A stretch of DNA of 64,000 nucleotides from Zygnema circumcarinatum SAG 698-1b (GCA_037447605.1 CM074804.1:7913909-7977908), one strand, 5' to 3'. Shown: positions 3,101 through 64,000, counted from the first letter of the stretch. Made by a program: numbers and translations. Notes: generated by a model not told the origin, from the letters alone.

Positions 3101-3519
3101 CTTCAATAGTCTTTGATAAAGGGGAAGATAATGTGCGGAAAAGGGCAGCGGAGGTGCTCTCTGTGATGAGTGTCGATAGGCGATGTGGATCGGAGGTGAA
3201 ACAAGCATTAGACCGAATAATTCCGGAGGAGGCGAAGGATTTTATTGAGTGGCAAGTACCCCTCGCCAACATTAATGATGATGTGGTGGATGATGAGGCT
3301 ATGTCCCATTTCCTCGCACACCGATTTCCTGCAGAATGGTGGACCGCGACTTCGTCCGAATATTCATCCATGTCGGAGGTAACAGAACAGCTTCCAAATG
3401 GCAGGATGGAATTTGCAGAGCAGGCTGAGAAGGACCATCGGAATGGTGTCTCCGGAGCTGCGCCCAACCATGTTGAGCCTAAAGATGTTGAGACCAAAGA
3501 TGTGACTACGGTGGACTAG
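146..3519 (+). CDS. 3' part of a divergent RME-8/DNAJC13/GRV2-like protein (ARM/IWN-repeat); the gene starts upstream of the window
   Basis: Exons about 146-332, 620-1059 and 1239-3519 join in frame at GT-AG sites. The segments IWNREVRTELR, YDALKDEMVISGVFVK, LPLDMLSTLARDPTEA...TPLLVWEE and KELYMGGFYV resemble the C-terminal IWN-repeat region of DNAJC13/RME-8, as recalled rather than searched. The J-domain region is not in the window. Confidence 0.65.
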
Positions 3520-8284: not shown

Positions 8285-11250
8285 ATGAATAACTCTCAGG
8301 CCAGCCTTGCAGCTGGTTTCTGCGCCGGTATTGCTGAAGTTATTGTAGGTCAGTCTCTGCATTTCATCTCCCCTGATTTTCTTTTTATCGCTCTCTTTCG
8401 CGATCTCTTTGTCAATTTTTATCTCATTCATGAAGCAGAAGGCCCTTATGGTTTGCGCGACATTTGTCGGTTTGCTCACCATATGATTTGGAGTCATTAC
8501 AGGCTATCCATTTGACACTCTAAAGACGCGCCTTCAAACTTGTGGCTCTTTGGAGAGAGGCAGCTGCTTCGACTTGTTGGCGGCGTGGAGATGTGCATTG
8601 GCCTTATTCAAGCAGGAAGGGGTGGGGGGGTTTTACAGGGGGCTCATCCCTCTTATGCTGCAGGTAAGGAGAAGTGCATCCTTCTCCCCCTCTCTCGCGC
8701 ACTCTCTCCTTCTCTCTCTCCTCCCCCCTTTTTTTTTGCATGTTCGAGGCTTACATATGGTAACATGTCCCTTCAAGGTTTTTTTTCTGGCGCCACCTTC
8801 TCTTAATCTCCGGATGTGGTTAAGATACTCCGTTCTTTTCGTCTGAGCTCCAATCCCTTTATTCGACTCGCCTCCCCTGCAGGAGGCCTTGGGCGTGTCC
8901 CTCCTCTTTGGCGCACGTGACTGGATGAGGGAACACTTTGGGGCTGATATAAGGCGGCCCGGAGCCTTCATCATTGCCTGCTGCCTCATTGGCTTGCTAG
9001 AGGCCCTCGTGTACTGCCCCTTGGATCATCTTAAAGCGCGAATGCAGGTGGAGGCACCCTCCTCCCCTTTTTCTTCAGGATTTCTTATAACATGTTTTTG
9101 AAATAAAGAAATGGATGAGTGGTTTAGTACCCCTGTCCTTGGTATAAGCAAGTTTCAAGAGATTGTCGTCGAGTAGACTGCTATTCTACCAATCGGTCTG
9201 TCAGAAACCATGTCCGCACCCTCGTTTTCAGACTCAGGTTGCACAATCATTTCCCTCGTCTCCTTCTCCTTTCTCTCCTTAAGCCGCTCCGTTTCCACAC
9301 GTTGATCGTTTACATCAGTAGTAATAATTTATTTGGAATGCTGAAATGTACCCACGCAATTCATTCGATTTCATAGGTAAAAGCCAACAACGACCGACTA
9401 CCTATGAATGGAAAGCCCTTGAGGAGTCCTCCCCCAGAACCAATCATCGGAAAAGGTCGAGGAGGATATGGTGGAGAGACTGGTAGTGGGGCGAGGTCAT
9501 ACATGGACGACTCTTTAGACAGAGGGGCCAATGAGGGACCAGGAGGAGCGTTTCTCGAGCTCCGAGCATGCCTTTGGAGCGTTATACGGGCTCGAGGATA
9601 TTCAGGCCTTTACCTGGGCTTCTTCCTGCAGGTCAAGCTGTTTTCTGAAAACTGTTTAGTATTCTCGAAGCATTTATTCATTTTGAGTGGCACCAATGTG
9701 CTCGTTGTAGGCATCGTCCTCCTCCCTCTCCTCCCGCTCCCTCTCGCTGTCCAAGCTAAAAGCAATCAATTAGGAGGAAAGGCCCCACTCCCCTCCTCCC
9801 TCCCTCCCTCCCTCCCTCCCGCCCGCCCGCCCTTCCCGCTCTCCCTCCCTCTCTCCCTCCCCTCCCTCACTTTCACTCCACCCTTTCCCCTTGTCCCCTT
9901 TCCCCTCTCTCTCCCACTCTAACACTTATTATTTAGAGCTTCATGTCAACGTTGTGCATGTATGTGATGGGCTTGGGCTTTAGTTGTTCCCGATCTCACA
10001 GAACAAGGCATTGCATATGTGCAGTTCTTTAATCTTTTAGAGGCGGTTTTGGTCAGTTGAATCAATCCAGATTCGTCCGCATTGTTCAATGCAGGCTGGC
10101 ATTGAGGAAACTTGCATCCCTCGAAATGCATGAACCAAGCCGTGTGAAAACTGTTGGTATTGAACTGAAGTGCACAGTCTGCAGACTTCATGCTTGTGTT
10201 TACTGCTGGCTTATGTCAGCTAGCAGCCTTCATGTTTCTTAGGTTTTTTTGTGAAGCTTTTAGGAGTTTTTAGGTGTTTCCAAGGTTTCCAAGTTCAGAT
10301 TCAGCTCGTGGACGGGGGGTGACGACTTGAGAAGGTTTTGGATGACAGGCTTTGAAGGAAATGGTCGGCAATGTCGCCCTCTTTGGAGTGTATGACACCA
10401 CAATGCTGCTGTTCAGTGGATCACATTCCGCCTCCCAATCATGGACCGCCATTTGGCCTGCGGGAAGCCTGGCAGGAGTGTCATATTACTTGGTACGTTT
10501 GGCTTGGTTGCACCTTGTTCCTGAAGCCACAGGGCTAGTAGTATTAGTATAAGTGGTCGGTGCCTTTATGTAGTTTCTATAAGAGGACTTTAGAATCATC
10601 CAGTGCCCTCTTGTTTTCTTTCTACTTTGAAGTGTGCAAATAGGACTCTCTTTCACATGTAGGGCTGTAGTTTCCACCCATTTCACTCTCCTTACGCAAG
10701 CAAGTCCATCATGGCTACTTGGTTCCCCTTCCATTTTCTCTAACCTAGAACTTGACCTATGTCCCTCCGTTACTTTCCTTGATGGACTCCGAAGTTTATT
10801 GTAATCGGCTCACCCCCATCTACCCTCCATCTTAATTCTGAAAAACGTCAAAACCAAGTAGAACTTGTCCATCCACTATTACCTCCCTTAATAGCACAGT
10901 GATACCTCGTGTGTGTGGAAAAAACCCCTCTTACTGAACCTGTGGTTGCGCAGGTGAGCTTCCCCCTAGACACCATAAAGAGCAAGCTGCAGACGGACTC
11001 TCTGGTCAGTCCCCGCTACCAGGGCTCCGTCCACTGCATCCGAAAAGTCCTCTTCCAAGAGTGCACCTTCCAAGACCTCTACCACGGGCTGTCCATGTGC
11101 CTGCTGCGAGCCATCCCGGGAGGAGCTGCGGAGTTTTTCGTGTTTGAGCTCGTGTTCATAATGTTGTACAAAGGAGCCAACCCCACGAAGCTGCCGGGAC
11201 TCATCAATCTCGGAGTCATGCAGACTGAGATTTCCGACCTACTCCATTGA
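8285..11250 (+). CDS. Mitochondrial carrier family (SLC25) protein, amino-acid/carnitine-carrier-like
   Basis: Six exons (8285-8348, 8503-8663, 8883-9047, 9377-9631, 10349-10492, 10954-11250). There are three Px[DE]xx[KR] signatures (YPFDTLKTR, CPLDHLKAR, FPLDTIKSK) and three GxxG[FL]YxG-type motifs. Substrate is not determinable from sequence alone. Confidence 0.9.
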
Positions 11251-13137: not shown

Positions 13138-14389
13138 GGCCCTCCCTCCTCCTCTCTCTGCTTCTCCTCTCCCTCCTCCCGCTCCTCCTCCTTCTCCTCT
13201 CCCTCTCCCACTCCCGCCCTCTCCTCCCCTCCAATGTGCGCTGGAACTTTTCTCTTTTTCTCGTTTTTTTATCAAAGAATGCTCTCTCTTTCTAGCCCAC
13301 AAATCTTTAAAATTTCGGCCCTTCCGCTCTCTTTGGCTCCCTCTATAATCGAATTTCGAATTTCGATATTCAAAATTTTAAAGTTTCTCATTGCAAACCG
13401 GTTAGACAGTGGGCCGTCGTGGCGTGGTCGTGACGCCATGGTCAACGAACGGGACCCAGCTTGACGTTGACTTGGGGCGAGCGCCTGCCGCGTGCCATCT
13501 AGACACGTGGCATGCTGTGGGGCACGATGAGATTTACCACCTGTCTATGGTGCCACGTCGGACAGTTCCGCAAGTCACACTCCATGTCACAGTTCACAGT
13601 CCCGTTACATTTAACAGCTTAATGATTTCATGACGTCATCGCAATCAGTTAACTGTAAAGTTCTGTCCTACATAGATTTGTCAAATTTTCAAATTACAAA
13701 TTTACAAATTTCTCGATTGGTTGCGCGAGGAGTTTCGCAAGGGAGTTAGCGAATCATCGCCGGGTATGACCTGCTGCAACTTCCAAAGCTTTCAAGCTTT
13801 TTGTTTTAAAAAAAAACTCTGTTATCAACCCTGTTAATATTAAGTGGAACCAACAGAACTTGATGCTGCTGTTGCAGCTGTCACCGTCTTCGTTTGCCGC
13901 ATGGACTTTGCAGATCCGTGCGACCCACATCGTGCTGGCGCAGTGAGCCCTAGGCTCGCAGCCCCACAAATTACCCCACTCATTACAGTTTGAAATTTCG
14001 ACTGAAATTGCCGTGACTGGGTAAGCACACACCGAAAGGCCGCCAGTCCTTTCTTATGACTAGGAGTGACTGCAGCAAGAGGAGTACACGACCCATATAA
14101 TGGCGATCAGTAGTAGGGTAAATTTATCTCTCCACCTTATGGACAACACCGTATTGTACCTCTGTGCCTTGACCCATAGAATCAAACGACGATGGGAAGA
14201 AAGGAGGCCACTTCTCGTCTTCGCTAGAGATCATCGCAGGGGTCAGGTTCTGATCAGGTTATCATGTCACAGAATTACTGCATAGACTGTAGTGATGAAC
14301 AAAATGTTTATGGGTTTTTCTTCTATCTCTAAGGAAACGGAATCAGCTTCTGCTGAACTGAACACAAACAAAAAAGAAAAAATGTGTTG

Positions 14390-16536: not shown

Positions 16537-19500
16537 CGCTCTCCTCTCTCTCTCTCTCTCAAGTTACCTCATGCAGACCGCAATGCAGGGGCGTAGCATC
16601 CAGCACAGTAGCAGGATCTAGACTCGTGATGTCTAAGCATTCGCCAAACTTGAGGGAAAAGGAAGAAGCAAACTTACAGCAGCCTTTCTTCTCCTCTCCT
16701 TCTCCTCCAACTCCGCCCGTTGCTTCTCAGCCTGCCGTTCCGTCTCACCCCTCTTGGCCCTCACCACCTCTTCCCTCTGCCTCTTCCTTCCTGCTACCTC
16801 GTCGTCTTTTTTCTTCTTCTCCTCTTCTTTCAACTTCTTTTCCTCCTCCATCTTTTTCGTCTTTTCCATGTCCATCTTTGTCTTTGAAGTCGCCTTTCTC
16901 TGCCTTAGCTCTGGACCTGCCTGTCCAGACAAAGCTGTCTGACTCTCATCATATGCTTTAGATTCTGCTCCATGTCCTTCAAACTCTGATGAATCCAAAT
17001 GTAACATACTATCATTGCTGAGATGGGGTCTTACAGAAGTCATCCTTCCGTCCTCCTCCCCTTTTTCCTGTAATGCGTCCCACACATTATGCTCATTTGC
17101 TGTTTCCTTGTCCAATACTCTTTCCTTATTCTTCTCCCTGCCTCTCTCTCGGGCCCGCTCCATTTCCTGCTCCCTCTGTCTCTCCTTCTCCTCCTTTGCC
17201 TTCTCCATGGCAACTCTTCTCTGTTTCCTTTCTTCGGCCTTCCGCTCCTGTTCTCTACGAGCTGCCTCAGCCGCCTCCAAAGCTCGTACTTTCACCCCTT
17301 TCTTTCCTGCAACCCAAAGCTAAAAACAGGTCAAATTCGGAAGTCTTCAAAACTTCGAGTGAACCTTTACCTGCCTGATCTATACCTTTCTATTTCCAAA
17401 ATCGAACTCTATGAAATGTGGTTGTTCACAGTCCTGCGTCTCCCTCTGCTTCAACCGGAGACACTAGTCTGTGATACTGCACAGTGCGGGCTGTCAAACA
17501 TAGCCCAGTTCAGGTTTTAAAATGCCTTTCTACATTCAATCAGACCCTGATACAAGTCAAGCCATTCGAACATGTCTGCCATGCCTAGATCAAAATCATT
17601 TCCATTTTGTAAGTGGACAGTAAAAGAGCACAAACCTGCGGCAGGTGGTAGTGGAGGCGGAGGCTTCTTCATAAGGGCTGCGAATGACACCACGGATGTG
17701 CAAATATTCGGACAGGGTCCCGATTTACTTTCTATTTCACCAATTGCATTCTCGACCTGATTCCCACTGCTTGCATGCTTTTCATTCTCCCAATTTGCTC
17801 CTTCTTCCAGCACTCTTACTGAAGGGTTTTCTTGAAGCTCCTCCGCTCCCAGAAGCTGCTTCTGCTCAGCACTTAAGGCATTCGAAACACATTCCTCCTC
17901 AAACTGCTTCTCTAGTACGAGCTTCCTTCCACTAAGAAGAGGTGAAACCTGCTCTGCTGCTGATGGCAGGTTTGGCATCTTTCTAGCGGAAAGGCTTTTG
18001 AGATATCCAAATACAGCAGCAACTCCCCTAGCAACACTCATTTGTCTTGGGCTTGGAGTAGTCTTAGCTTCTCCCGTCTCGACTATGGCCGGACTTGGAA
18101 TCGGGGTGCCAGCACTTGGCCCATTTAATTTCTCCCCCACTTGAACTTGTGGGTCAAGTTTCTCATCGGCTTCAACTGGTCTGAAGGGCAGTGCGGCATC
18201 GTGGTTAAATTCTGCTTCCTCTTCTTTCTTCTGCAAGTTGGCATCCTCCTGTCTCATTTCTACAGCTCTTTCCTGAATATCCGGAGAATCTGTTAGCTCG
18301 AAGTTCTCATGGAGTTCATCAATGTTGCCATTTTCCTTTACCTCCATTTCAGCATCTTCGTCCTCCTCTGACTCTTCCACATCGTCCTCCTCCTCGCCCT
18401 TCTTTCCCTCCTTCTCCACCTCCTCCTCCGCTTCCTCCTCGTCTTCCTGCTGTTGCTGCTGCTCCTCCTCCTCCTCCTCCTCTTCCTCCCCCCTAATCTC
18501 CTGCTCAACCATGCTTCCTTCTTTCTCAACACTTGCTTCATCCTCTCCTATTGCTGATCCCCCTGTATTGCTTATTTTCCCCTGCACTGAGCTCAGAATC
18601 CAACTGCTTGGCAGGCTTTCAGGTTCGTGTTGTGCAGCATCATGGTTGAATTCTAAGTCCTCTCTTTGCAGGTTGAGATCATCTTGCCTAAGTTGTGAAA
18701 GTCTTACAAAATCGGTAGAAGTTGTTAGCACAAGATGCTGAACGGACTCACTCTTACTGACACTTTCTTTTGCTTTGACGAAGCCTTGTTCCTCCTTCTC
18801 TGACCCCTCTACCTCCTCCAACTCTTCGTCGTCCTCTGCTTCCTCCTCCCTCCCCTCCTCGCCCTCCTGATCCACTTTTTCCTTTCTCTCAACCTCCGCC
18901 CACTCCTCGTCCTCAACCATCCTCCAATGTTTCTCAACTCCTGCTTGTTCTTCTCCATCTTCTGTTCCTTTCTTGCTATCATTCCCCTGCTGAAGGCTCA
19001 AAGTCCAGCTGCCTGCAATACTTTCAGGCTCGTCAAGACCGTTTGATTCTGCTTTCTCTCCTTCCTTCTTCTGCATGTCAAAGTCCTCGTCTCTAGGCTT
19101 TAAGGCCCCTTTTCCTATGCTCCAAGAAGCTATTGGCTCGAAATGTTCACCTAACTCACAGATCTTATCACTCACTTTTACCTCCGTAAGTCCTAGTTCA
19201 TCGTTCACTTGGGATACTTCTACCTCTTCCTTCTCCTTGTCTTCCACTTCGTCATCTTCCTCCGCTCTCTCCTCGTTCTCCTCTCTCGCCTCCTCCTTCC
19301 TCTCCTCGACTACGCATAACTCACAGGTGTTGTCACTCTCTTTTACCTCCGAAAGTCCTATTTCATTGCTCATTTGGGATACTTCTACCTCTTCCCTCTC
19401 CTTCTCCTCCACTTCGTCACCTTCCTCCGCTCTCTCTGCTTTCTCCTCTCTCGCCTCGTCCTCCTTCCCCTCGACTATGCTGTCTCTTTTCTCAACTCCA

Positions 19501-21359
19501 TCTGCTATTTTCCCTGTCCTGCTATTGTCGACTTGGACAAGGCTCAAATTCTGAGGACAAAGTTCCTCGTCACAAGCTTCCATGTAGCTCTCAAACTCTG
19601 AAAAGTCTCCTTCCGCCAAAATATCGAGGCCTGCAAACCCTCCCTCCAGTGCATTCACTCCCATACCTTTATACGCTTCATCGGTTGTCTGCAGGAGTGA
19701 TCCTTCCCCTTCTGCTTGGAACTCCTGGTCTGCTTGGTCACCCAATTGGTCAGGATTCTCCCCCTTAATTTCTTCCAGAGCTGGAAGCTTCTCTCTTCTC
19801 CACTCTGATTCCTCCTCTCCCTCCGTTTCTCGGTGGGTCCCACCTGGAGATTCACTCGGCGTTGTCACATTCGTGGCCTTGTTGCCTTCGTTAGGAGCTC
19901 TTTCATCTTCAGTTGATATTGAGCAGGAGACTGCATGCTGAAATTCGCCCTCGTTAATGAAACCAACCTTCACAGAATCAGTCAAAGAATGGTTGCCCTT
20001 TTTCCCTCTCATCTGCCTCGTCGATCTATTTGTCGGAGGATTTACTGCTGCTGTAGGATCTTTACTATCATTCCCTCGTGCCCGAGCTCCAATCACGGGC
20101 GACTCCTTTCTGATCGTTGACCCAGATACTTCTGCGAAATCTGAGATATCTCGTGATGGAACTGCAGGTATCGAAAGGTAGAGTACATCTTGGACTGTTT
20201 CCTGGTACCTATCGATGTCGTTCGCCTGCACTGCCACCTCCACTTTCTGGGAGGAAAGGTCCTCCTGCAGCATCAGAGCATCAACTTTGGCCGTACTATT
20301 CGGCTCCACCACCATCTTCGCCACTTCAATTGGACCTTCTTTCTCCTCTCTGCTTGCATGCGAGCTTGCTGCCAGCGAATACGAATTGGGATCCTCTGCA
20401 GCTGCTGACACTTGCGCGTCCTTTCTCAAACATGTTTTAGGTTGAACACCAGCTTTTGATTTGCTACAATCAGCAAAAGGGCTGCATATGCTATGCTTGG
20501 TACGGTCCAGTGGTAGGGGCCCAAGGCCTTTCTGGCGAGGCTTGACCTCCGATTCACCTCTAGCTAGTGTGCATCTATTCAGAGGTATCACATTCTCTTT
20601 GTTCTGACTACCCCAAACAAGCTGCCTCATGATCTTGCCGCCTGTGGAAGGGGCCTCAGTTCCTCCTTCCCTCCGTCCTGTTTGCTGCTGAGCACTAGGG
20701 GCACGGATAGACGTCATAGCAAAATTGGAACTAGGAGTTTCAGTCGCAAACTTAATCAGACTGGGATCTGCCGGAAGGGAATCTAAGGGATGTAACCGAG
20801 CACGTTTTGCCTTATGGAATCCCGACTCACCGGCTCCTCTACTGCTAAAAGTATTCTCAGTTCCAAAGTTTGCTGTGCGCTTTCGAGCCCAAGTGAATAA
20901 GACTTGCAGGTGCTCATCACTAGCTTCTTTGCCCAGCTGCACATGTAGCCTCAATTTTTCCTGCGAACGTCATTCAGAAGCGAACTCAGAATGGAAGTGA
21001 GAGCTGTATTGAAAAAAGAAATCGAAAACAGGTCCGGTGCAGGCTCCGGTTTAACTGATTGCAAAGAAAAAATCGCTATGTGGAGCATAACGGTCAACTG
21101 TAGCCTATCAAACGAGCCTCATCAAATGTGCTTTTCTGCCAATATGGTGAAATAATTTCTGGTATATTGCTTGAAAAAAAAGCAGAAGTAACAGACCGGA
21201 AAGGCAGGTCCACTACATACTTTGAAAGAAACAATCTCCTGGAGCCTGAATTTTCGAAGAGAACGGCAACAATCCTGTAGCGTGACAGGCTTGGAATAGG
21301 TAACTCACCATAATAGCATTCATACAGTTCAGTTCTCCAATCGTGTTGTATTCCGCCAT
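14390..21359 (-). CDS. INCENP: INCENP (inner centromere protein, chromosomal passenger complex), large acidic form
   Basis: The last exons splice to an IN-box: YEISPYRDSDDEDDE...PLWTK...QAAINPDEIF...CDLNEVF...RKRTSSGNWSDDRLT...YKKAMGYV*. It is preceded by E/K/R coiled-coil exons (about 16030-17300) and a 3.4-kb acidic exon (17517-about 20960). The first two small exons (start 21359) are tentative. Confidence 0.85.
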
Positions 21360-33648: not shown

Positions 33649-35817
33649 ATGGCTTCAAACGAAAAAGAGAAGTTCGAGAAGGAGTCTCCAAGTCACTTGG
33701 ATGGGACCGTGCTGGCTGATTGTAAGCCATTCAATATTGAGGTCGGCTTTTTCACTGTCCCCTAGCGTAATAAATTTTGCTCAACTTTCGCTTGTCGCAA
33801 GCCATTCATTACACTTTTTAAACAAAGAACCATGGATTTCTTATTCTTATGATGGATTTCAGTTGTTAGTGGCCTCGACTGTGACCTTCGTGCATAGACA
33901 AACACAGGTGAATTTTTCTGTGTATTACAGCTTACAAGTGCTTTCATCGTTTTGACCAAAACTCAGGATGAGCTGAAGAGATGCGGAGGTATCAACGTGC
34001 TTGTGCCTGGTCCTGAGGAGAAAAGCATCATTCGTCAACGTCTCGATGAAGGCCTTGAGTGCGCCTTCAATTGCGCGGCGAAGTAAGGGGATGGCGAACT
34101 ACTCCTACATACTTTGCGTGCTCCTTATTCCTTGTTTCAATCAGATTTTTCTTATCTGTAGGCGTTTTGATTTGCCTGATGGATAGTTTCGGTTACAGCG
34201 TGCATATGACTGCGATGTACGCGTTTCAAGGGCTTTCTCTCTTCTGCAAGAAGGACACGGTCGCCTTGCCCGGCCACGCCAAATACTTCCGCAATCGTTC
34301 TTCCGAGTATTTGAAGGACTTCAAGCGCATTAACTCTTTCACCGTACGCTCTACCTTTTCCTTTAAAGAAATATGTGACAGGCCACAACCACTCCAAAGG
34401 GAACTTATCTGAAGCTATATCAATGCTTCAAACCATTGATTCCTGCAAACTTAAGATAGACCCGGAATATCTTCCTGTTCAACTTGAACTGACCTTTTGT
34501 GTAAACTCCAGATTGCTCGCGGAGGGGAAGTTGATTTGCGAGAGATTCTTGCCCCTCCAATGCCAACTCTTTCTGAACGAGGAGAAAATGGTCTCACGGG
34601 TGATTCTTCTTCTTGTTCGCTGTGGTTAACTGGTTATTGAATATGCCTCGCTTCTTTTTGTTTGTTTGAAATGACCACTAATGCTGTTGAGAAATTCTTT
34701 CCATTGTCAATGAGTGAATGATTTTATAACCTTGGAAGCAGTGGTTGAAAAACTTCCCGTTCAAAAATTATCATCGGCGCAGCATAAGTTGTCAAATTCG
34801 TAGTAACCCTGTTTCGGTATTGTTATCTTCCCGAAGTCCGCTGCCGCGCTTTGACCCAGCTGACATGAACCTGTTCAATTTTTTTTTACAGTAATGGAAT
34901 TCTCGTTGAGTTTGAACAAGCTGGTATACGAGAAGCAGCTGCATCTTTTGCGGGTGAGCAGGCTCCTCGTTAAGTTGGTCGTAAACATTTTCTTCATAGA
35001 AAGTTAGTGGCTTTTTCCAGGCACTGTGAGAGCATTATGCCCGCAGATCTGACATAGCGGTTGCACATCATGATCGTCAGGCCGCAGAGAATGTGGGAGA
35101 TGGTGGTGCTGCACAGTTTGTGACTGAAAAGTTGATCAGGCCTATGGTGAGCCACAGGAAACTTCTGACTTTCTCTTCACCCTGCTTCTCGAAGTGCGTG
35201 CCTTTGAAAGATCAATGTATGAATGCTTGCATCGGTCGTTTCTTAATCCCGAGGACCTGGCCGGATTTTTCTCAAGGATGTCGAATGAATTCAAGTTGAT
35301 TCTTTCCAAAACCAACTTCTTATGCGAAGTGTTTGTTATTTTGGTGCTAATCCCTTAAGCGGTTTCTGCTCTTTCATTTCCATCTTGGCAATCAGGTGAA
35401 GAGGATAAAAAAGAAGGGCATGTATATTTCCATGCTCCGCCGCATGGGGAAGGGAGTTGGTGAGTCCCCGTCCATCCTCTGTTGTCTGTGCCTTTTACCT
35501 TTGCACAGTTACAGATCTCAGTGATGGATTTTGTTCTGGCTGCAGGGGAGTATACTTTCGACCAAAACCTGCTCCATGCTGGGGCTTCTGGAAAGCTCTC
35601 ATCGGAAGAGGTAAGATGAAACCGAGTTGACCATTTTTTGTTTTGAGCCGCATATGCCTGTATGTGCGGTACCGTACTCGCCTTTTTCATTCGTTTCATG
35701 GGTTCTTCACAGCTCTAAACTTCCCTAGGTTCTTCCTTGCTGTAGGAGGATGGCCTCGTTGGCCGCATGGGAAAGGCGTCCCTTGGATTCAAACATCACG
35801 CTCGCGGGGGGTTCTGA
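33649..35817 (+). CDS. Ferritin-like protein 1 (ferroxidase-dead, no transit peptide)
   Basis: Nine exons: 33649-33741, 33967-34082, 34199-34343, 34512-34599, 34892-34953, 35081-35146, 35396-35459, 35546-35610, 35746-35817. The ORF is intact. Motifs SIIRQR, VALPGHAKYFR, RGGEV, VMEFSLSLNKLVYEK, LRRMGKG and GEYTFDQNLL align colinearly with plant ferritin, with introns at the positions recalled for plant ferritins. Confidence 0.85.
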
Positions 35818-37326
35818 TCTGAGCCCTTGAAGCAGGATAGCTTCTTGCTTTTTCTTTTGCTGCCAAAAATGGCCACAAGTTTTGTCAACTACGTGAAAGT
35901 TGCGAGGGGAAGCAGAATTTCAGCGCAGTTCAGTGTAGTGCAGGGTCTAGTGCGGTGCAGGGTCTGGCTCGGCTATGAGAACGGGAAATAGAAAAGAAGT
36001 TGAGATTTGCAACTTTTTGGGGAAACTTTTTTGTTCTGAGAAGACGCCGGCAGAGTGCAAGATATATATAACGACGTTTGATGGCTGGGGATGTTAGTGC
36101 GACTGTCGTTCACCCATGCATGTGATGTCATTTTGATGCAGGAAGATGGCTGCATGCATGGTTCTGCTGAGTTTGCTGTGTGGCCGCTGAGTGTTGCTTC
36201 AGCTGAAGAAAGAACTCCGTCCAAATGTTGCCAACATTGTTTGGGAAGATGGTGTGTAATGTTAAAGCTGGGCGTGTCTTCTCTTGGCGGACTGCTTGTG
36301 CTTTTCTGCAACAAATATAGACTTCGCTTTTTGGGGTTTTGCTTGGGAAAACGCGGATAGGTTCTGTTGCTGTAAATGTTGTTTCCAATAATCCGATGCT
36401 TTTGCTATGTTTGCAGTCCGCATGGCGTTCTGAATGGTTGGTAAATTACGCCATCCAACAATGTCCGCACAAAATATTGCTTGACGAGAGTGCAATGGCT
36501 GTAATACTGCAAGTGGTGAAGAGGCACAAGGAAGGAAGGAAGTGGCACGAGCAAAGACATTAAACATGAACATGTTGTGGCAGTGGCTCTATTTCTAGAT
36601 TGCTACAATTGACAATGTTGTATCACCATATGAGAGCGCAACAACAATGAACACTGCGTAACTTTTGAAACTTGTATAGTATTCAACTATTGAGTATATG
36701 TACAAACCGACTAAACAAATGCTGACTTGTTTCCCTCTCTCCCCCCTTCTTTCTCTCTCCCTCGAAGTAACACACGAAAATCTAACCCCACTCGCCTTGC
36801 AACTACAAAATTTGGTCAATTCATGATTACACCTCGTTCTTTCAATTTGCGAAGTATGTCAGCAGCAGCAGCATGCTTTGCGTCCTTCTTTTTTCGCCCA
36901 CTGCCAACTCCTTTTTCAATCACAGTCCGATTGTTCCCAAAAACAACACCTTCCAATGCGAACCTGCTTGTCAACATTTTTTGCGAGTTAAAATTTTGGC
37001 AATAAAAATAAAACTGCTATACTGATTTGCTCAACTAACTTCTAATCGCTGGGATCCAAAGTGACACGGGTCACACATTCCTACATGATTGATTCAATAA
37101 AGATATAAAATATCTGTGGCTGTTAACAGTATTTATTGGATTCTCACGAAAAAGAATTGGCTTCATGTATGAAAACGAACATCGTGGTACTGTCCACTTG
37201 TGTTAAAAGTAAAAAATTTCCATACGATATTTTGCATACACAACAAGCATATCCAACGCTAAAAATTAACAATCGAAGAGCAAAAAAGAGAGAAAAAAAC
37301 AAAAGAATGGTAGTGAAAACGTACCT

Positions 37327-37388
37327 GGGGCAGTGACTCGGGCCACTTTGCTCCACAGGGGCAGTGACTCGGGCCACTTTGCTCCACA
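37327..37388 (+). repeat. 31-bp perfect tandem duplication
   Basis: GGGGCAGTGACTCGGGCCACTTTGCTCCACA x2, ending 15 nt before the long inverted repeat. Confidence 0.95.
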
Positions 37389-37403
37389 AGGGTGACAGAA
37401 AAC

Positions 37404-38640
37404 CTTTTATGGATAGGACCAAGCCGGCTCCATCTACAAAAAAATGCTTCATTGCAACAGCCGCTTCCCCTCCTACACATCTTCAACCTTCAACGGTTCC
37501 TTGTCTTTTGCAAGCGAAGTTTTAACAGGGCAAGATTCAATAGTCGCTTTTATGCGAGTAACCAAGCGTGCTGCGCCCATACAAAACGATTTCATTGCAC
37601 CGGCCTCTCCTTCTTTTACGAATCCTCCAGTGGAACATCTTCATGTACCCCTTCGGTTGGATACCTTCGTGGACGAGCGGGATACGCCTTCAACTGTAAG
37701 TCATAGAAACTTGAATCTTTTAGCACGAAGGTTACATAGAAAACATTCTATGAAGAAAGTTGTCAATGAAGTGCCAGTGGAACCGTGTGTTTCAAAAACC
37801 GTGAGGGCACGAAAACGACAAATAATGAATCAGTCTGAGTCTAACTTTGAACTGGCACTATTTTGTGAGGCCTTCAGTAGGAGTAAGGATGCTGTTCCAA
37901 ATTTCCCTTTGCCAAGTCAACTTCCAAATGCTATCCCGAACACATCGACTTCAAGAGTAGTAGGAGAAGAGTATTTCATTCACGTCTATTTCATTCATTT
38001 CATTCCCAACCCCTTTTTTGACATAACTCCTCCAACTCACTTATAATCAAATCATTCGTGAATGAAATTGACTCTTCTCTTACCACTATTGAAGTCGATG
38101 TGTTCGGGATAGCATTTGGAAGTTGGCTTGGCAAAGGGAAATTTAAAACGACATCCTTACTCCTACTGAAGGCCTCACAAAATCGTGCAAGCTCAAAGTT
38201 AGACTCAGACTAATTCATTATTTGTCGTTCTCGTGCCCTCACGGTTTTTGAAACACACGGTTCCACTGGCACTTCATTGACAACCTTTTCTATAGAATAT
38301 TTTCTATGTAACCCTCGTGCTAAAAGATTCAAGCCTCTATGACTTGCAGTCGAAGGCATATCCTGCTCGTCCACGAAGGTATCCAACCGAAGGGGTACAT
38401 GAAGATGTTCCACTGGAGGATTCGTAAAAGAAGGAGAGACCGGTGCAATGAAATCGTTTTGTATGGGCGCAGTACGCTTAGTTGCTCGCATAAAAGCGAC
38501 TATTGAATCTTGCCCTTTTAAAAATTCGCTTGCAAAAAACAACGGAACCGCTGAAAGTTGAAGATGTGTAGGAGGGGAAGCGGCTATTGCAATGAAGCAT
38601 TTTTCTGTAGATGGAGCCGGCTTGATCCTATCCATAAAAG
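37404..38640. repeat. Long inverted repeat (foldback); arms of about 580 bp and a 72-nt spacer
   Basis: 37404-37984 is the reverse complement of 38057-38640 with scattered, mostly transition, differences. The ORF track shows the same peptide on + (37444-38046) and - (38210-38659). Confidence 0.95.
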
Positions 38641-39179
38641 CGAGTATTGAATCCTGCACTGCTAGAAGTTCTCTTGGAGGAGTGACGAGGACCGCTGGTA
38701 CAAGTACAGAATTGGAAACTCACATTCAATGCATTCAGAAGAAGGAAGGATAGCCTTTACCTCTCGTTTTTCGCAAAGGCATGCACAGCCGGCTACAGTA
38801 AACCATTGGAAGTGGAGAATTGAAAGTGCATGGCAGTGCATGCCCTAAAGCCACATGCATGCCAAGGCGGCCCTATGGTTGCTCTCTCGCATGAGAATTT
38901 GCAGTATGTGTCACTTTCCCTCCTCTCCGGTTCCCTCGAGCCATGCAATTTATACGCGTGCTCTCACCAGCGACCTCCCGGCAGCATGTCATATTGGAGC
39001 TCCACATGGCGTCTTGCAGAAGCAGCCGCCACGTGGAATGGAGACAGATATTTTGCGGTGGTACAGGCAAAGGCCAGGGGACTGGAGGCTGACAGTAAGT
39101 GAATTTTTGTGAAGGTGGTGGCACCTACAGCTGGTAGTTTGCCGGCCAGCTCCGAAGGAACTAGTGATCGTTGGTGGCC

Positions 39180-41653
39180 ATGGCTCCCAAGGGGGCAGAG
39201 AAAGAGAGAGAGTCCTTGCAAAATAAGCTGGAAAGGGAGGCTCCAAAACACCTTGACGGAACAGTGTTACCTGATGAGAAATCTTTCGACCTGCAGGTAA
39301 CCTACGAAATCTAGATTTTAGAGATCATTTAAAGAATTCCTTACCGTGAGTATGCATAGCTACTTGTTTTACGCACAAGTCCATAGCGGGATTAGGAGTC
39401 TCAACGTGCCTCTTTTTTCCAACTTTGGTTAAGATCTATGTTTTGATAGGTGTGTGTTCCTCCCTGTTCATGAAACACTATCGACAAAGCGTTTTCAGCA
39501 AATGCGTTTGCACACCATGACTATTTGCCGCTTTCCGTTGATATTTTCTAAACATAAGAATTCAATCAATTGGAGTCACTCAATCGTATGATGTCGTCGT
39601 CTCAATCGTCGTCGTCTCATCTGCTTTTTTCTTGAACAATATTTTAGGCCGAGGGTAATTTGCTGTATTATTATTTACTGTATGATGAAGGTGAAAGTTG
39701 TGAATGTTATGATGAAGGTGAAAGTTGTGAATGTTTTGATGCAGGAGGAGCTAAAACGCCATGGCGGTATTGATACCCTCGTGCCAAGGCCCGGGGCTGA
39801 CAGTCTTGTTCGTCAGCGCTTGGATCTTGGCCTCGAGAAAGCGCTCAGTTGCGCAGCCCAGTAAGTGTTTCTCTCCTCCCCTTTCCATTTTTTTTCAAAT
39901 ATGTCTTGTTTGGCTGCTTTCAATATGCTTGATACATTTTCTGCACAGTTTTGACACATTTTTTACATAGTTTTGACTCGATTTGCGCGATTGTTGTTTT
40001 GCAGTGTGCACCTGACAGCATGGTATGCTTACGAAAGGCTCGTTTTGTTCTGCGGGACCGACATCGTCAGCTTGCCTGGCCACGCCAAATTCTTTCGCAA
40101 GCGCGCTTTCGAGTACCATGTGTCTTTCAATGAAATTGCTTGCTTTGCGGTACATTTGTCGTTGCCGTTTGCCTCTTTGAAGCGCATTTCTATTCAATCA
40201 ATTTTCACACTGTTTGTTTATTTTATAGAATATTCTTGAAGCGAATCACATGCATGTAAGATGACTTGTATCAATCTTTTTGTTTAGATTGATAGCTTGC
40301 TGTCATGCTTGCCGTTGCAGAGTGGGCGTGGTGGAGACATGAACCTGCGACCAATTCTCCCCCCCCCGGAGCTCAACGTTGATAAGGGCGGTGCTGGTTT
40401 GGCTGGTATTCTTTTTCCTACTATTCTTTTTCCTACTGTATTTTTGTTTGCGGAGTTTAGAGTAGTTTGATGCGGAGTTTAGAGTAATTTGATTCTTTCA
40501 ACAATGTGCTATCTAGCTAGGCCAAACCTTCAACGTACAGAACAAAAATGTATATATGTTTCAGGATTATGTCACCTACAAACCCTTTTCGCTCTGTTAT
40601 TGCAGCTATGGAGTTTTCGTTGGCCACTTGCAAGGTGATTCCTTCACTCTTGCTTCCGTTTTTCTTCTCCAATAGACTCTTGTTATTTTCGTTCAAAATG
40701 TCAATTCCACTCTGAAAGTTGCCGAACGATTTTTTTGAAACAAGGTTTTAAGTAGCACTATTTTTTTCTTTTTCTAAATTTGCTGCCTCACTTTCTGAAT
40801 GGATGCAGCTCGTCTATGAGAAGCAGCTTCAGCTATACAAGGTAGGCAAGACTTCAGCCATGGCTTTAGAACAGAAAAATCTGCAACATTCTTTTGGCCG
40901 AGCTTGTGACATTTCAATCGTATATTCTTTGTATTATTTTTAAGATGAAACCATTCAGACGCTCCTTCTTGTGCATGCGTTGGTGAGCAGGCTGCAGAAA
41001 TAGCAGGCGATGGGGGGGCCATGTACTTTGTCACCGATTCCCTGATATCTCCCATGGTATGTATGGTGGCTTTGACTTACAGCGTTGCAAAAAAGGTCAA
41101 GTAATGAATCATTCTGGATGTTTGTCTATTCGTGCTTAATATAGATAGGACTTGAAAGGTTCATTTCTCCATTAACCGAGAGATTAACTTATGCTTGGAT
41201 TCTTGGTTGTGCGCAGGTGGAATCCATTAAACAGACCGCCGGTTACATCACCACTCTACGACGCATGGGACCTGGACTGGGTAAGCAGTAGCATACGTAG
41301 TAGAATTGTGTTTCGGCTTTTGCTTTTGACATGGATTGGTTGGGAACTGTGCTTTGACCTTCGTGTTGCTTTACAGGAGAATACATGTTTGACCAACATC
41401 TGTTGCTTGGAGTTGACCCCCGGGCTCTCTTAGCCGGTCTGGTAAAGCCTAAAAGCCCTTTTTTTCTCTTGAAAAGTGTTGAAGCTGACATACAGAATTA
41501 TATTGCTGTTGCTTGGTACCACCCTCCCTTACTTTCTTTCCGCTTGTTTTTTCCATTTCTTTCTTTCCTATTGGCCCAAATTTGCAGTCGCAAAGCTCTA
41601 CTGTGGAGCCCCCCTCGAAGAAAGCGCGCGTGGCAACATCAACCAACATTTAG
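39180..41653 (+). CDS. Ferritin-like protein 2 (ferroxidase-dead, no transit peptide, C-terminal NLS-like motif)
   Basis: Ten exons: 39180-39296, 39745-39860, 40005-40149, 40321-40405, 40606-40634, 40809-40841, 40991-41056, 41217-41280, 41377-41441, 41588-41653. Motifs SLVRQR, VSLPGHAKFFR, RGGDM, AMEFSLA, VESIKQ...LRRMG and GEYMFDQHLL. It ends ...VEPPSKKARVATSTNI*. Confidence 0.85.
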
Positions 41654-43351
41654 AGGTTGCGCAGATGTGCCCTCCCTCATCCCTCTTTGTAGGCTTTGGG
41701 TGCAATTGGGGCGGCTGCAATAGGGTTGGGAGCTCGGAACAAAGAAGAAAAGCGGGGCATATCAAGGGAGTGGTTTTAAAAACTCTTGTAAGAAGTGTTG
41801 GAAGGACACATTAAAAGAAGTCTTGGAAGGACACGGAAATGACGATGTGGGCGAGTGAAATGAGAGAGAGAGAGAGAGAAAGAGAGTCTGCCTGCATGCT
41901 TACGGATGGTGTCGTGAGGTGGAACCAACTGGGATGATGATCCTTTGGAAAAAGAAAAAACGTTTGATTTGTTTTGCGAGCGCTTATGGTATGCTTTGAA
42001 GTGGCGGTGCGTTTTTGTAGAAGCTCCTTGCGTAGATGGGCGTGCACATGGGCCCAAGTCCAGAGCTTGCTTTCCCCGCTTCAACCTTCTCTCTCTCTCT
42101 CTGTCCATGGCACCATTGCCGTGCCCTCCCTCCCTCTCTTCGAGTCCGTTAGTTCCAGTCCCTTCCTCCCTCCTGCCTGCCTGCTTGCTTGCTTGCCTGT
42201 TCCTCTCTCTCTCTCTCTCTGCTCCCGACCCCATTTTCCCCCCCTTCAGTCTTCGGGCTCTTCCCCCTCGAATGTGGTGACGTCAAAGGTTGAAACTTGC
42301 ATGCGTCATTACCCTGGAGGGTTCGCAATTTCATGACGCAGATACCCACAACCCCATGAAAATGCCAATTGGACAGTTTTGATGCTACAGCCAGACCGTA
42401 GCAGTCTGTCGTGGCTGCTGTAGCACATTTTGTAGCCCATTTTGGACTGCTGAATAGTGACGTAGATGACGTCACCAAGTTGGAATTGCAATGTGACGTC
42501 ATAAAGTTGCAGTCGTTTCTATTTTGTGATATCATCAGGCTGGAATCTTTTTTGTCATGGATGCGGACAGGTTTACGGGTTCGATTCAAAAAATTGCATT
42601 TCAGAGCCTCCCAAGTTCCAACGGGTGGCTCGAATTGCCCGCAGCCCCCCCCCTTCCCCTCCAGCCCGCAAATCACCATTTTTCGGTTCGATTCCAGTTC
42701 AAAAAACTTCTTTTTTCAAACTCGGTTTTTAAACAGCAAACTGCCAGTTGTCGCACACTCATTGGGCTTGATCACCCAATACCACCGAAGTATTTGGAAA
42801 AAAATATTTTTAGCTATATTAATTAATTAATTAATTATTTATTTTAGGAACGACAATCATCCAAAGCTTACTTTTTTTTTCAAATTTCATGTCCAAGTTC
42901 CACTTGATCTGAGTTTTGGCCAGAAAAAAATATTATTTTCTCTTGCAATGTTCAAGTTCAACCAACCAAAAATCGAGAAATTCAAAGCTACCCGCACGCG
43001 CCTGTTTCGCTATACCCCATTTTAGTGTTCGATCCTCCTGTCTCTATTTTCCCGCAACCCGCCGGTTGAGCCCCACCCTCCAGCTGGCGTGCGCCCATTG
43101 GTCTGCGCCCAGGTCGCCCGCCAATGTTTGCGCGTCACGTGGCGCCCGCCCGGAGCGCTTTCCGCCCTCCGCCCGTCGCAGGCCCTCACAAAGCCTCATC
43201 ACGCCACGTCAGGTCTTGGAAACCCATCCTTATTTGGCAGGAGGGAGAGGGAGAGGGAGAGAGAGGGAGAGAGGGAGAGTGGGAGAGGGAGAGGGAGAGG
43301 CCGGCAAGAAAGGGAGAGAGGGAAGTAGAGGAGGAAAGAGAAGGGAGGGAA

Positions 43352-61741: not shown

Positions 61742-63052
61742 TCAAATAACATAATTCGACCATTCTTTTAAGAACGATGTGTGGTCCATCGTCTTGCTCG
61801 GAGTCTCCTCCAAGTGCTTGGGATTGCTCTTCCCTCCCACCAGCTTAGCGGGATTGCCTACCACGGTCGTGTGAGGGGGAACATCTCCCAACACAACCGA
61901 ACCTGCTCCAATCTTCGCGCCTTCACCAATGACAATATTTCCCAGCAGCGTTGCCCCTGCACCGATTAAGACCCCGTCCTCAACCTTGGGATGCCTGTTG
62001 CCTGCAACGGAACCGGTTCCGCCCAATGTGACATGATGCAGAATCGAAACGTTGTTGCCGATCTCTGCCGTTTCACCCACAACCAGTCCTGTAGCATGGT
62101 CCAGCATCAAGCCGCATCCAAGTTTGGCCGCAGGATGAATGTCGACATGAAACACCTCCGAGACGCGGCTCTGCAATGCGAGAGCCAAAGGTTCCCTGCC
62201 CTGTCCCCATAGTCGGTGAGCTATCCTGTGAGCCTGGCAGGCAAGGTATCCCTTATAGTTGAGTAGGCACTGTGAAAATGTTTCGCATGCAGGGTCTCTC
62301 TCCTTCACTGCCATTAAATCTGCCCTAAAGGCTTCCCGCACGTCCTTATCGTCCATGAAAGTGTCTGCAATCAGTGAAAATAGCTGTGAACTCAGCATTG
62401 TATCGCTGCTAAGCTTGTTCGCGAGGTGGAATGCAAGGCATCGTTCCAATGATCGGTGCGACAAGACGGTGGAGTAGAGGTAGCTAGCAAGAGCAGGCTC
62501 CGCCTCGGCGTCTCTCCTCGCCTCCGCTCGAATTGCAAGCCACAAATCATCAACTTGTATGCGGCCACTTGTCGAGCATCCCGCATGATCCGCTGCTCTG
62601 CTTTCTACAGCTATTGCCTCATTACTGCTCTCTGTACCAGAGATATTTAAACCAGAATCAGAATCCTTGCCATTGACATTCCCTCCTGCGCTCGTTGCTC
62701 CGCCTGCAAAGTCTCCTCTCCCTGCTGCCGCAGCACTGCTATGCTCTCCAGCATTCCATGGCTGGCTGCTTCCCTCCGTTAACTTGTTAGCTTCAATCAG
62801 AACGGCACTCACCAACGCCTGCTGCTTCCCAGAAGCAGAAACCTTCTCTGAACCGCCTGCACAAAAACTCCCCCTCTCCCTCTTCCTCTGCGCGTCCTCT
62901 GCAAGGCGCAGGCCCGTCCATCCACGGAGTCGAGAGTCGCTGCAAGGTACGTGAGCAGGAGAAAGGGAGGAGAGTGATTCTCGAGGAGCAAGGACAGGGA
63001 GCCCCGCGACAAGAGCCAGCTTGCTGGAAGCAGAAAAAGCCGCCATGACCAT
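61742..63052 (-). CDS. SERAT: Serine O-acetyltransferase with an organellar transit peptide, intronless
   Basis: First ATG at 63052. Motifs EPALASYLYSTVL, DPAC, YKGYLACQAHR, DIHPAA, DHATG, GVTLGGTG-type, RHPK and hexapeptide repeats, ending MDHTSFLKEWSNYVI. Confidence 0.96.
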   Translation of the reverse strand: MVMAAFSASSKLALVAGLPVLAPRESLSSLSPAHVPCSDSRLRGWTGLRLAEDAQRKRERGSFCAGGSEKVSASGKQQALVSAVLIEANKLTEGSSQPWNAGEHSSAAAAGRGDFAGGATSAGGNVNGKDSDSGLNISGTESSNEAIAVESRAADHAGCSTSGRIQVDDLWLAIRAEARRDAEAEPALASYLYSTVLSHRSLERCLAFHLANKLSSDTMLSSQLFSLIADTFMDDKDVREAFRADLMAVKERDPACETFSQCLLNYKGYLACQAHRIAHRLWGQGREPLALALQSRVSEVFHVDIHPAAKLGCGLMLDHATGLVVGETAEIGNNVSILHHVTLGGTGSVAGNRHPKVEDGVLIGAGATLLGNIVIGEGAKIGAGSVVLGDVPPHTTVVGNPAKLVGGKSNPKHLEETPSKTMDHTSFLKEWSNYVI

Positions 63053-64000
63053 AAGAGGAGCCGAAGGAACAAGTGCAGAGAGAGAGGGAGAGACCGACAC
63101 AGCAAAATAAACCCCTTCCCCTTCCTCCTCCCTTACTCTCTCCCTCCTCCCTCCTCCCTCCTCCCTCCGTCCCTCTCCCCCTCCCTTTCCCTCTTCCTCT
63201 CCTCTCCCTCTCCCTCCTTCCCTCTCCTCTCCTCTCCCTCCTTCCCTCTCCTCCCCTCTCCCGCTCCCTCTCCCACTCCTTCCCTCTCCTTTCCCTCTCC
63301 CACTCCCTCTCCCTCACTCCCACATTCTCCCAGCGTCTTATGATAACCTCCCCATCAGCGCCGGGCGGCGCCCTCCCCACCGTCCGATCGACCCCCATCA
63401 CATCGGACGCCCCTCCGTCATCCACTTCGCCCTTTTCCACCCAACTTCCCCCTCCACCACGTGCCCTCTCCGCAGGTGCGAAAACCGCCCCTCATTAGCT
63501 GCTCGTCCTTTCAAACGTGTCACGAACGCAGTTGAGTGGTGCCACGTGACCTTCGGAGGCACCTCCAGGGAGCCTAAAGAGGAGCTTCGCGCGGGCGGGC
63601 GAGAAATTTCTGTGGCCCTTCGCAGGCGCCGAAATGGAAGGAAATTGTGATGACGTCATCTAAGCAGAGGGAAAATAGTTTTTATCTGCCCGAGATCCAA
63701 GTACCCTCTTTAAGTGGGCTGTAGTGGCTGCCCGGAAAAAGCGATTTTTTTTATGTGGAGCTCATGAAAGTTTGGCAGTTTGGGATCCAAGGCAGGAAAT
63801 TTCATTGACGAGTGCCGGAGACTGACGTCATTTATTCTTTTTTATCACCTGCGGCCGAAGAATTTTTAAAATGTTTGGGAACTATGCCACATGGAGACAG
63901 TTGAGGTTAACGTTTTAACCGTTGGCCGATTCCATCCACATGCTGGCAGATTCCAGTTTGTTGTAAAACTGCAATTCCACGCGAGTTCCAGTAGAGTTCG

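Follow-up and report, generated by a model that had tools for sequence, protein, structure and literature searches.

We analyzed a 64,000-nucleotide (nt) stretch of the Zygnema circumcarinatum SAG 698-1b genome (GCA_037447605.1 CM074804.1:7913909-7977908), hereafter the window, whose coordinates are used throughout. Between positions 33,649 and 41,653, the window carries a tandem pair of ferritin-fold genes, termed g1 and g2, whose products retain the plant ferritin scaffold and have lost its iron-handling residues. Both gene models were rebuilt from reading frames and GT..AG splice signals in the window sequence. g1 (33649..35817, + strand) consists of nine exons (33649-33741, 33967-34082, 34199-34343, 34512-34599, 34892-34953, 35081-35146, 35396-35459, 35546-35610, and 35746-35817) of 93, 116, 145, 88, 62, 66, 64, 65, and 72 nt, a pattern that agrees with that of the Closterium orthologues, and encodes 256 amino acids. 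The coding sequence of g2 (39180..41653, + strand) is divided into ten exons (39180-39296, 39745-39860, 40005-40149, 40321-40405, 40606-40634, 40809-40841, 40991-41056, 41217-41280, 41377-41441, and 41588-41653) of 117, 116, 145, 85, 29, 33, 66, 64, 65, and 66 nt and encodes 261 amino acids. Every intron of both genes is of the GT..AG type, and both frames are open. The two proteins were 54–55% identical over their full length and 53% identical in exon 3 (47 columns), as an initial annotation of this DNA had estimated by hand. The exon sizes of 62, 66, and 64 nt given there were also correct, the 62-nt exon of g2 being present as 29 + 33 nt. The intron that cuts this otherwise universal ferritin exon (40635-40808) is private to g2, was confirmed by spliced contigs, and is a recent gain. 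In each gene, exon 2 (33967..34082 in g1 and 39745..39860 in g2, both + strand) encodes the extension-peptide homologue and the start of helix A, as judged by alignment with the Closterium orthologues. In-frame stop codons lie 14 codons (g1) and five codons (g2) upstream of the ATG, in line with the initial annotation; four AG dinucleotides occur between this stop and the ATG of g1.

The expression of g2 was investigated using contigs from public RNA runs, which were placed on positions 38700-42100 so as to avoid a foldback in the intergenic spacer. Spliced contigs of three runs (X2, X3, and X6) exactly reproduced all nine g2 introns, indicating that g2 is expressed and spliced as modeled. The 5' leader (39029..39179, + strand) was contiguous with exon 1 in an X6 contig covering 39029-39291, with no joint upstream, and contained a TGA stop at 39165, in frame with the ATG five codons downstream. 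Because this unspliced leader carries the stop, no upstream exon lengthens the g2 protein, and the RNA gives no sign of a spliced exon supplying a transit peptide for this gene. The 3' untranslated region (41654..41842, + strand) ends near 41842, where poly(A) addition was marked by a loose A10 end in an X3 contig. The transcribed leader also holds a 24-codon upstream open reading frame (ORF; 39038-39112), which is out of frame with the main one. One X3 contig was missing a G from the G7 run at 41012 in exon 7, which would cause a frameshift; the deletion was not seen in X2 or X6, and its probable cause is an error in the homopolymer or variation between strains. In addition, contigs reading through g2 introns (39268-39510, 40471-40685, 41029-41245, and 41412-41616) co-existed with the spliced ones and point to pre-mRNA not yet spliced, to retained introns, or to a share of genomic DNA in the libraries.

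Exon 3 of g1 alone matched ferritins of solved structure in the PDB (phmmer, E 1.6e-5), in an alignment that pairs Glu27 with His, Glu62 with Tyr, and His65 with Asp. A Closterium orthologue, P0006, aligned with soybean ferritin SFER4 (PDB 3A68) from the extension peptide through the E helix with an E-value of 8e-32. Given this match and the recovery of all nine g2 introns in spliced contigs, the observed gene pair is far beyond chance. PF00210 was assigned to the proteins P0004, P0006, and P0008 in precomputed annotation, and a Pfam scan of eight single window exons gave no match, the exons being too short. The extension-peptide motif, RGG, and GEYxFDQ were all found in both window proteins, as initially described. 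The segment TGV/DGT...F...E..K...LVP....S[LI][AIV]RQ aligns the window genes with Closterium, whose own segment aligns with the SFER4 extension peptide. The initial annotation reported a gap-free alignment with plant ferritin helices; here, the window proteins aligned with the orthologue without gaps across the helical core, and the sole gap fell in the loop between helices B and C. In the AlphaFold2 model of P0006, helices A–D and E were formed with a core predicted local distance difference test score of >90, and the model superimposed on soybean H-2 ferritin (6j4j_A) with a template modeling score of 0.95 and a root-mean-square deviation of 1.0 Å. Residues 1-40 and 237-281 (the last 45) were disordered. 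Structural look-alikes found in the ESM Atlas were generic 'Ferritin' clusters only. On the basis of this model, the window proteins are predicted to keep the four-helix bundle and the E helix.

The gene structures told the same descent. Proteins were threaded onto their genomic loci, and introns were compared by alignment column and phase; for the Sphagnum gene, in whose first part spurious micro-exons were threaded, the last seven exons were used. The exons of rice FER1 measure 287, 84, 61, 88, 62, 66, 64, and 44 nt, and the Sphagnum gene ends with exons of 84, 61, 88, 62, 66, 64, and 56 nt; the 88/62/66/64-nt series recurs in the clade formed by g1, g2, and their orthologues. The canonical introns of rice and Sphagnum lie at 218.2, 246.2, 267.0, 300.1, 321.0, 343.0, and 364.1 (column.phase). 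Klebsormidium retained all seven of these positions and phases, and g1, g2, and Closterium retained six of the seven, the 84|61 intron having been lost to give the 145-nt exon. The clade has two introns of its own, one at columns 167-169 in the N-terminal part and, in most models, one at columns 386-388 after the E helix; the latter delimits the terminal exon that encodes the C-terminal tail, an exon that canonical ferritins lack but that is ancestral in the clade. Since the shared intron positions are independent of any tree, they argue both for descent from a plant ferritin gene and for a single clade. Homology, extension peptide, and intron positions thus agree that these are plant-type ferritin-fold genes.

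Residues were compared with 116 canonical ferritins, in which 80 columns were at least 85% conserved, using six clade members and the numbering of the human heavy (H) chain. The substitutions in g1 and g2 were checked codon by codon. In g1, the former ferroxidase codons (34203..34319, + strand) encode His27 (34203-05), Phe34 (34224-26), Cys41 (34245-47), Glu61 (34305-07), Tyr62 (34308-10), and Asp65 (34317-19), and the later sites (34915..35146, + strand) encode Asn107 (34915-17), Gln131 (35114-16), Thr134 (35123-25), and Met141 (35144-46). The corresponding codons of g2 (40009..40125, + strand) encode His27 (40009-11), Tyr34 (40030-32), Cys41 (40051-53), Glu61 (40111-13), Tyr62 (40114-16), and Ser65 (40123-25), followed (40629..41056, + strand) by Cys107 (40629-31), Tyr131 (41024-26), Thr134 (41033-35), and Met141 (41054-56). 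All the substitutions listed in the initial annotation were therefore present: E27H, E62Y, and Q141M in both proteins, H65D/S, E107N/C, and, at the 3-fold pore, D131Q (g1) or D131Y (g2) and E134T in both. Across positions 27, 34, 61, 62, 65, 107, and 141, g1 reads H,F,E,Y,D,N,M and g2 reads H,Y,E,Y,S,C,M, and neither series makes up a ferroxidase center. Glu61 was retained in both, and Tyr34 was Phe in g1 and Tyr in g2. E27, E62, H65, E107, and Q141 were each 100% conserved in the 116 canonical sequences; E27, H65, and Q141 were changed in all six clade members. Not only the window genes but, for the most part, the orthologues too have lost the pore carboxylates D131 and E134. Another exchange, Phe41 to Cys, was observed in 6/6 clade members (alignment column 234) at a position that is 100% conserved as Phe in the 116 canonical ferritins.

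The clade nevertheless retained 36-46 of the 80 conserved canonical columns (40 in g1 and 36 in g2), mostly turn and core residues: Y32, D44, V46, L48, G50, RGG, P88, K108, D126, R156, and the glycines before the E helix. The net charge of the core was +6 in g1, −2 in g2, and +1 to +3 in the orthologues, against −10.7 ± 1.9 (range −15 to −5, n = 116) in canonical ferritins; the isoelectric points (pI) of g1 and g2 were 8.9 and 6.7. With the ferroxidase center and the 3-fold pore carboxylates gone from both window genes, iron uptake, oxidation, and mineralization by the ferritin mechanism would be very unlikely. The residues that took over the former site varied among the six members, position 107 being N,C,G,C,G,E and position 141 M,M,A,E,A,R. 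Position 27 was His in g1, g2, and Closterium, Ala in Klebsormidium, and Met in the metagenome contig L005. Because the replacing residues vary within the clade, they suggest that constraint on the old site has relaxed, and they argue against a newly formed metal site.

When exon 3 was used as a profile in an exhaustive search of 1.84 billion representatives, only five proteins were returned: one each from Closterium and Klebsormidium nitens (GAQ86105.1), a canonical ferritin of a red alga, and two fragments from metagenomes. Further large searches used an alignment of the orthologues with exon pieces and an alignment of the orthologues with one canonical ferritin. Full-length Closterium orthologues of 267-282 amino acids were recovered from several strains in the follow-up searches. 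The g1 and g2 proteins themselves were absent from the protein collections searched, and land-plant members of the clade were not detected in the exon 3 and orthologue-profile searches, which could have missed divergent ones. In a maximum-likelihood tree of 30 sequences, the clade had the topology (Klebsormidium,(g1+g2, Closterium)) and was set apart from 24 plant and red-algal canonical ferritins with support of 100/99, so that the comparison with canonical plastid ferritin called for by the initial annotation placed the genes in a clade of their own. g1 and g2 were sisters in this tree (100/97). A 2317-nt European Nucleotide Archive metagenome contig (L005) represents a fourth lineage, closest to Closterium, with Met27, Gly107, and Met141, and the environmental contig L006 likewise encodes a member of this ferritin-like clade. 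In a tblastx comparison of the window with the loci of Closterium and Klebsormidium, made to detect synteny, only ferritin-like exons matched, and SPT5, the neighboring gene in Closterium, was not in the window.

The ratio of non-synonymous to synonymous substitution rates (dN/dS) between Closterium strains was 0.096, with a dS of 0.31, demonstrating that the orthologues are under strong purifying selection. Between g1 and g2, dN was 0.39, and no dN/dS could be computed because the synonymous sites were saturated (proportion of synonymous differences, pS, 0.78). Three-way distances suggested about 1.45 times more non-synonymous change in g1 than in g2 since the duplication. Intact frames, the expression and splicing of g2, and the selection on the orthologues bear out the view that these genes are not pseudogenes.

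Both ends of the proteins depart from the canonical pattern. Before the conserved glycine of the extension peptide, g1 has 18 and g2 26 amino acids, of which 23-28% are acidic; presequences across the clade measured 18-32 amino acids with 12-28% acidic residues, compared with a canonical median of 57 amino acids and 4.8%. The start MAPK was common to g2 and Closterium. The short acidic presequence, together with g2 RNA that carries no upstream exon, upholds the claim that no plastid transit peptide is evident. After the E helix, the clade has a tail of 31-45 amino acids, compared with a canonical median of 2 (maximum 15). The terminal exon of g2 encodes a motif, PPSKKARV (41609..41632, + strand), that resembles a nuclear localization signal (NLS). 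Its counterparts were PPTKRART in Closterium and CKRAK in Klebsormidium, giving the consensus K[KR]A[RK], which was absent from g1. A classical monopartite NLS follows the pattern K-K/R-x-K/R, and the tail motifs of g2, Closterium, and Klebsormidium all fit it. In the terminal exon of g1, GKAS (35770..35781, + strand) stands near the place of KKAR in g2, in an alignment that is loose in the short tail, and may be a decayed form of the motif. A nucleo-cytoplasmic location is likely for these proteins. Of the cytosolic or nuclear location proposed in the initial annotation, the non-plastid N-terminus held for both genes; the nuclear address is plausible, from the motif conserved in g2 and the orthologues, and import of g2 through its C-terminus is likewise plausible. 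The annotations of Closterium strains differed in the terminal exon (10323-10430, 108 nt, in L001 and 10164-10229, 66 nt, in L004). The difference adds or removes 14 residues just before PPTKRAR and could stem from the use of another acceptor site or from the way in which the strains were annotated.

Other features of the window were recorded as context. A foldback (inverted repeat) occupies 37404..38640, outside both genes, spanning 1.24 kilobases (kb) of the 3.4-kb intergenic spacer; its inner arms (37501-37972 / 38071-38542) are 472 nt long and 93% complementary around a 98-nt loop, and its outer arms (37404-37509 / 38535-38640) are 106 nt long and 92% complementary. A Pfam search with the ORFs on the foldback (37444-38046) gave no match, nor did one with the long ORFs at 1225-3519 and 17517-20954. 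The palindrome TGACGTCA occurs nine times in the window against 0.44 expected, and 0/100 shuffles reached nine. Three copies lie in 42278-42501, 0.6-0.85 kb downstream of the g2 stop, and the others at 13631, 48165, 50713, 53541, 63651, and 63823; the palindrome may be a promoter element of the basic leucine zipper/cAMP-response element type belonging to the next gene, or part of a repeat. On the minus strand, 61742-63100 holds a 452-amino-acid ORF with serine acetyltransferase N-terminal and hexapeptide-repeat domains (E 1.4e-37), which is likely to be a serine acetyltransferase gene.

Here, we propose that g1 and g2 are a nucleo-cytoplasmic tandem duplicate of an old streptophyte-algal paralogue of plant ferritin, dead as a ferroxidase and serving as a nuclear or cytosolic binding or protective scaffold rather than an iron store. 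We hold this reading with modest confidence, somewhat better than even. It builds on the gene models, the expression and splicing of g2, the homology, the loss of the iron machinery, the N-terminus unlike a transit peptide, the separate clade, and the purifying selection on the orthologues. We infer nuclear import, oligomeric state, and actual ligand. The pair would have arisen by lineage-specific tandem duplication of an old paralogue of the plant plastid ferritin gene. The family would have retained the extension peptide, the four-helix bundle, the E helix, and the plant ferritin intron positions, and exchanged the transit peptide for a short acidic N-terminal exon. It would have gained a 3' exon encoding a disordered tail of 31-45 residues with the monopartite NLS-like K[KR]A[RK], and lost the di-iron ferroxidase ligands, most pore carboxylates, and the acidity of the shell. 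Because of these three losses, ferritin-style iron uptake, oxidation, and mineralization would be excluded under this proposal. The subunits may oligomerize via the retained ferritin scaffold in the cytosol or nucleus, with g2 entering the nucleus by way of the motif at its C-terminus. There, the particle, near-neutral or basic in charge, would be a scaffold that binds or protects a partner, which may be nucleic acid or chromatin. g1, the most basic member and the one that lost the motif, could ride in with g2 as a hetero-oligomer or act in the cytosol.

Several points weigh against this proposal. The core charge of g2 is only −2 and its pI 6.7, and g2 is therefore not clearly basic. Any localization, assembly, or metal or DNA binding of the g1 and g2 proteins is a prediction, and the structure was modeled for the Closterium orthologue P0006, not for the window proteins. 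Support from expression covers g2 only. The branches of the clade are long, so that long-branch attraction is possible and the exact attachment point uncertain, although the shared introns argue independently for the clade. The predicted NLS is a match to a four-residue consensus only. Moreover, the C-terminus faces the cavity in a closed ferritin 24-mer, where it would conceal an NLS; the signal would be accessible if import came before assembly, if the E helix turned outward, or if the particle were open or smaller. A tail of 31-45 residues may itself be hard to fit in a closed cage. A bolder form of the proposal is tentative, and we consider it possible but doubtful. It sees an ancient nuclear ferritin-like particle of streptophyte algae, built from a plastid ferritin gene that swapped its transit peptide for a C-terminal NLS and was stripped of iron chemistry, binding or shielding chromatin or nucleic acid in convergence with avian ferritoid or bacterial Dps, and here forming a g1/g2 hetero-oligomer.

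Vertebrate light (L) chains show that a subunit with a dead ferroxidase center can still function. The window proteins could likewise be L-chain-like subunits of a cytosolic 24-mer that, by itself or together with a catalytic partner, serves as a store of iron or some other metal. The retained scaffold residues (the D44-V46-L48 turn, RGG, P88, K108, and the RRxG..G region of the E helix) and the fold kept in the P0006 model would suit such a role. However, in the exon 3 alignment the L-chain nucleation positions 57/60/61/64 are N,S,E,K in g1 and K,F,E,V in g2, not an acidic cluster; the pore carboxylates D131 and E134 are lost in both; and the core charge is about 9-17 units more positive than that of the storage-type ferritins sampled. 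The only catalytic partners known in the lineage are plastid-targeted and hence in another compartment (PMC4344583). We regard this explanation as unlikely. Less probable still is a re-purposed metal site, in which His27, Cys107, Met141, and Tyr62 would form a softer site, for Cu, Zn, or a similar metal, inside the four-helix bundle. In g2, four of the former ligand positions are indeed occupied by His, Cys, Met, and Tyr, and His27 is common to g1, g2, and Closterium. Yet neither position 107 nor position 141 is conserved within the clade, Klebsormidium has Ala and L005 has Met at position 27, and even close Closterium strains differ at 107 (G/C) and 141 (A/E) despite a whole-gene dN/dS of 0.096. 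The suggestion in the initial annotation that the shared His/Cys substitutions create a different metal site was consequently not supported, since the former-site positions 27, 107, and 141 are not conserved in the clade.

Two further explanations concern the address and the fate of the genes. The proteins might still be organellar, directed to the plastid or the mitochondrion by a first exon missing from the models or by a signal of non-canonical type. Descent from a plastid ferritin gene and the kept extension peptide fit this idea, and the RNA evidence on the 5' end covers g2 only; in g1, the upstream stop is followed by four AGs before the ATG. We consider it highly improbable, given that the g2 contig runs unspliced from 39029 through the stop at 39165 into exon 1, that g2 and Closterium share the MAPK start, and that the N-termini are more acidic than canonical ones and less than half as long. 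The lowest probability falls to decaying duplicates, by which one or both genes would be drifting, functionless relics, an explanation largely refuted for g2. The loss of all the catalytic residues, the lack of the NLS-like motif in g1, the faster non-synonymous change of g1, and transcript evidence that covers g2 only are what decay would predict. Against it, 256-261 open codons and 8-9 intact GT..AG introns persist despite a pS of 0.78, when about 12 stops would be expected under neutrality; g2 is transcribed and correctly spliced; the family is older than the Klebsormidium split and under the constraint measured in Closterium; and g1 keeps as many scaffold columns (40/80) as g2 (36/80). The proposed scaffold function without iron storage remains our preferred reading.

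The initial annotation had called these genes previously unrecognized. In full-text literature searches, we found no paper on this clade, nor any on a ferritin of streptophyte algae that is catalytically dead or lies outside the plastid, and to that extent the claim stands; the orthologues, however, already have public database entries, named 'Ferritin', 'hypothetical protein', or 'unnamed protein product'. The locus matters as a conserved, selected branch of plant ferritins, with g2 expressed, that has neither the iron machinery nor a plastid address and has a likely, predicted nuclear one. The gene family occurs in algal relatives of land plants and was not detected in land plants in the searches made. 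It offers a natural experiment in the use of a ferritin shell without iron, and the tandem pair, an NLS-like copy next to a basic copy that lacks the motif, a built-in test of piggy-back import by hetero-oligomers. Confirmation would make this the green lineage's first ferritin that is both catalytically dead and located outside organelles, and vertebrate L chains and avian ferritoid would be parallels of separate origin.

Ferritins of the plant lineage are described as catalytically active H-type subunits that are synthesized with a transit peptide and reside in plastids (PMC4344583). The clade resembles plant plastid ferritin (soybean SFER4, PDB 3A68/3A9Q; rice FER1) in its fold, extension peptide, RGG, E-helix motif, and 6-7 of the 7 intron positions. 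It differs in having no transit peptide, replaced ligands, two extra introns, and a 31-45-residue tail that is NLS-like, as well as a core charge of −2 to +6 instead of about −11 and, in the window genes, replaced pore carboxylates. The vertebrate ferritin L chain is likewise without a ferroxidase center, functional, and under selection. g1 and g2 are distinguished from it by an independent origin, evident in the plant-type gene structure and extension peptide, by the lack of an acidic nucleation cluster, by not being acidic, and by the C-terminal extension. To our knowledge, no catalytic ferritin shares a compartment with g1 and g2 as a partner. Atypical sponge ferritins are described as non-standard forms beside conserved ferritins (PMC8395497), and the likeness, drawn from that description only, is to an animal lineage. 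The closest functional parallel, by convergence, may be avian ferritoid, a ferritin-like protein with an SV40 (simian virus 40)-type NLS and a positive net charge that carries ferritin into the nucleus (PMC13534657). This nuclear carrier of the corneal epithelium resembles g2 and the orthologues in the NLS-like motif and in the lost negative charge. The two share no homology beyond the ferritin fold, and ferritoid pairs with a cytosolic catalytic H chain, a partner that has no known counterpart here.

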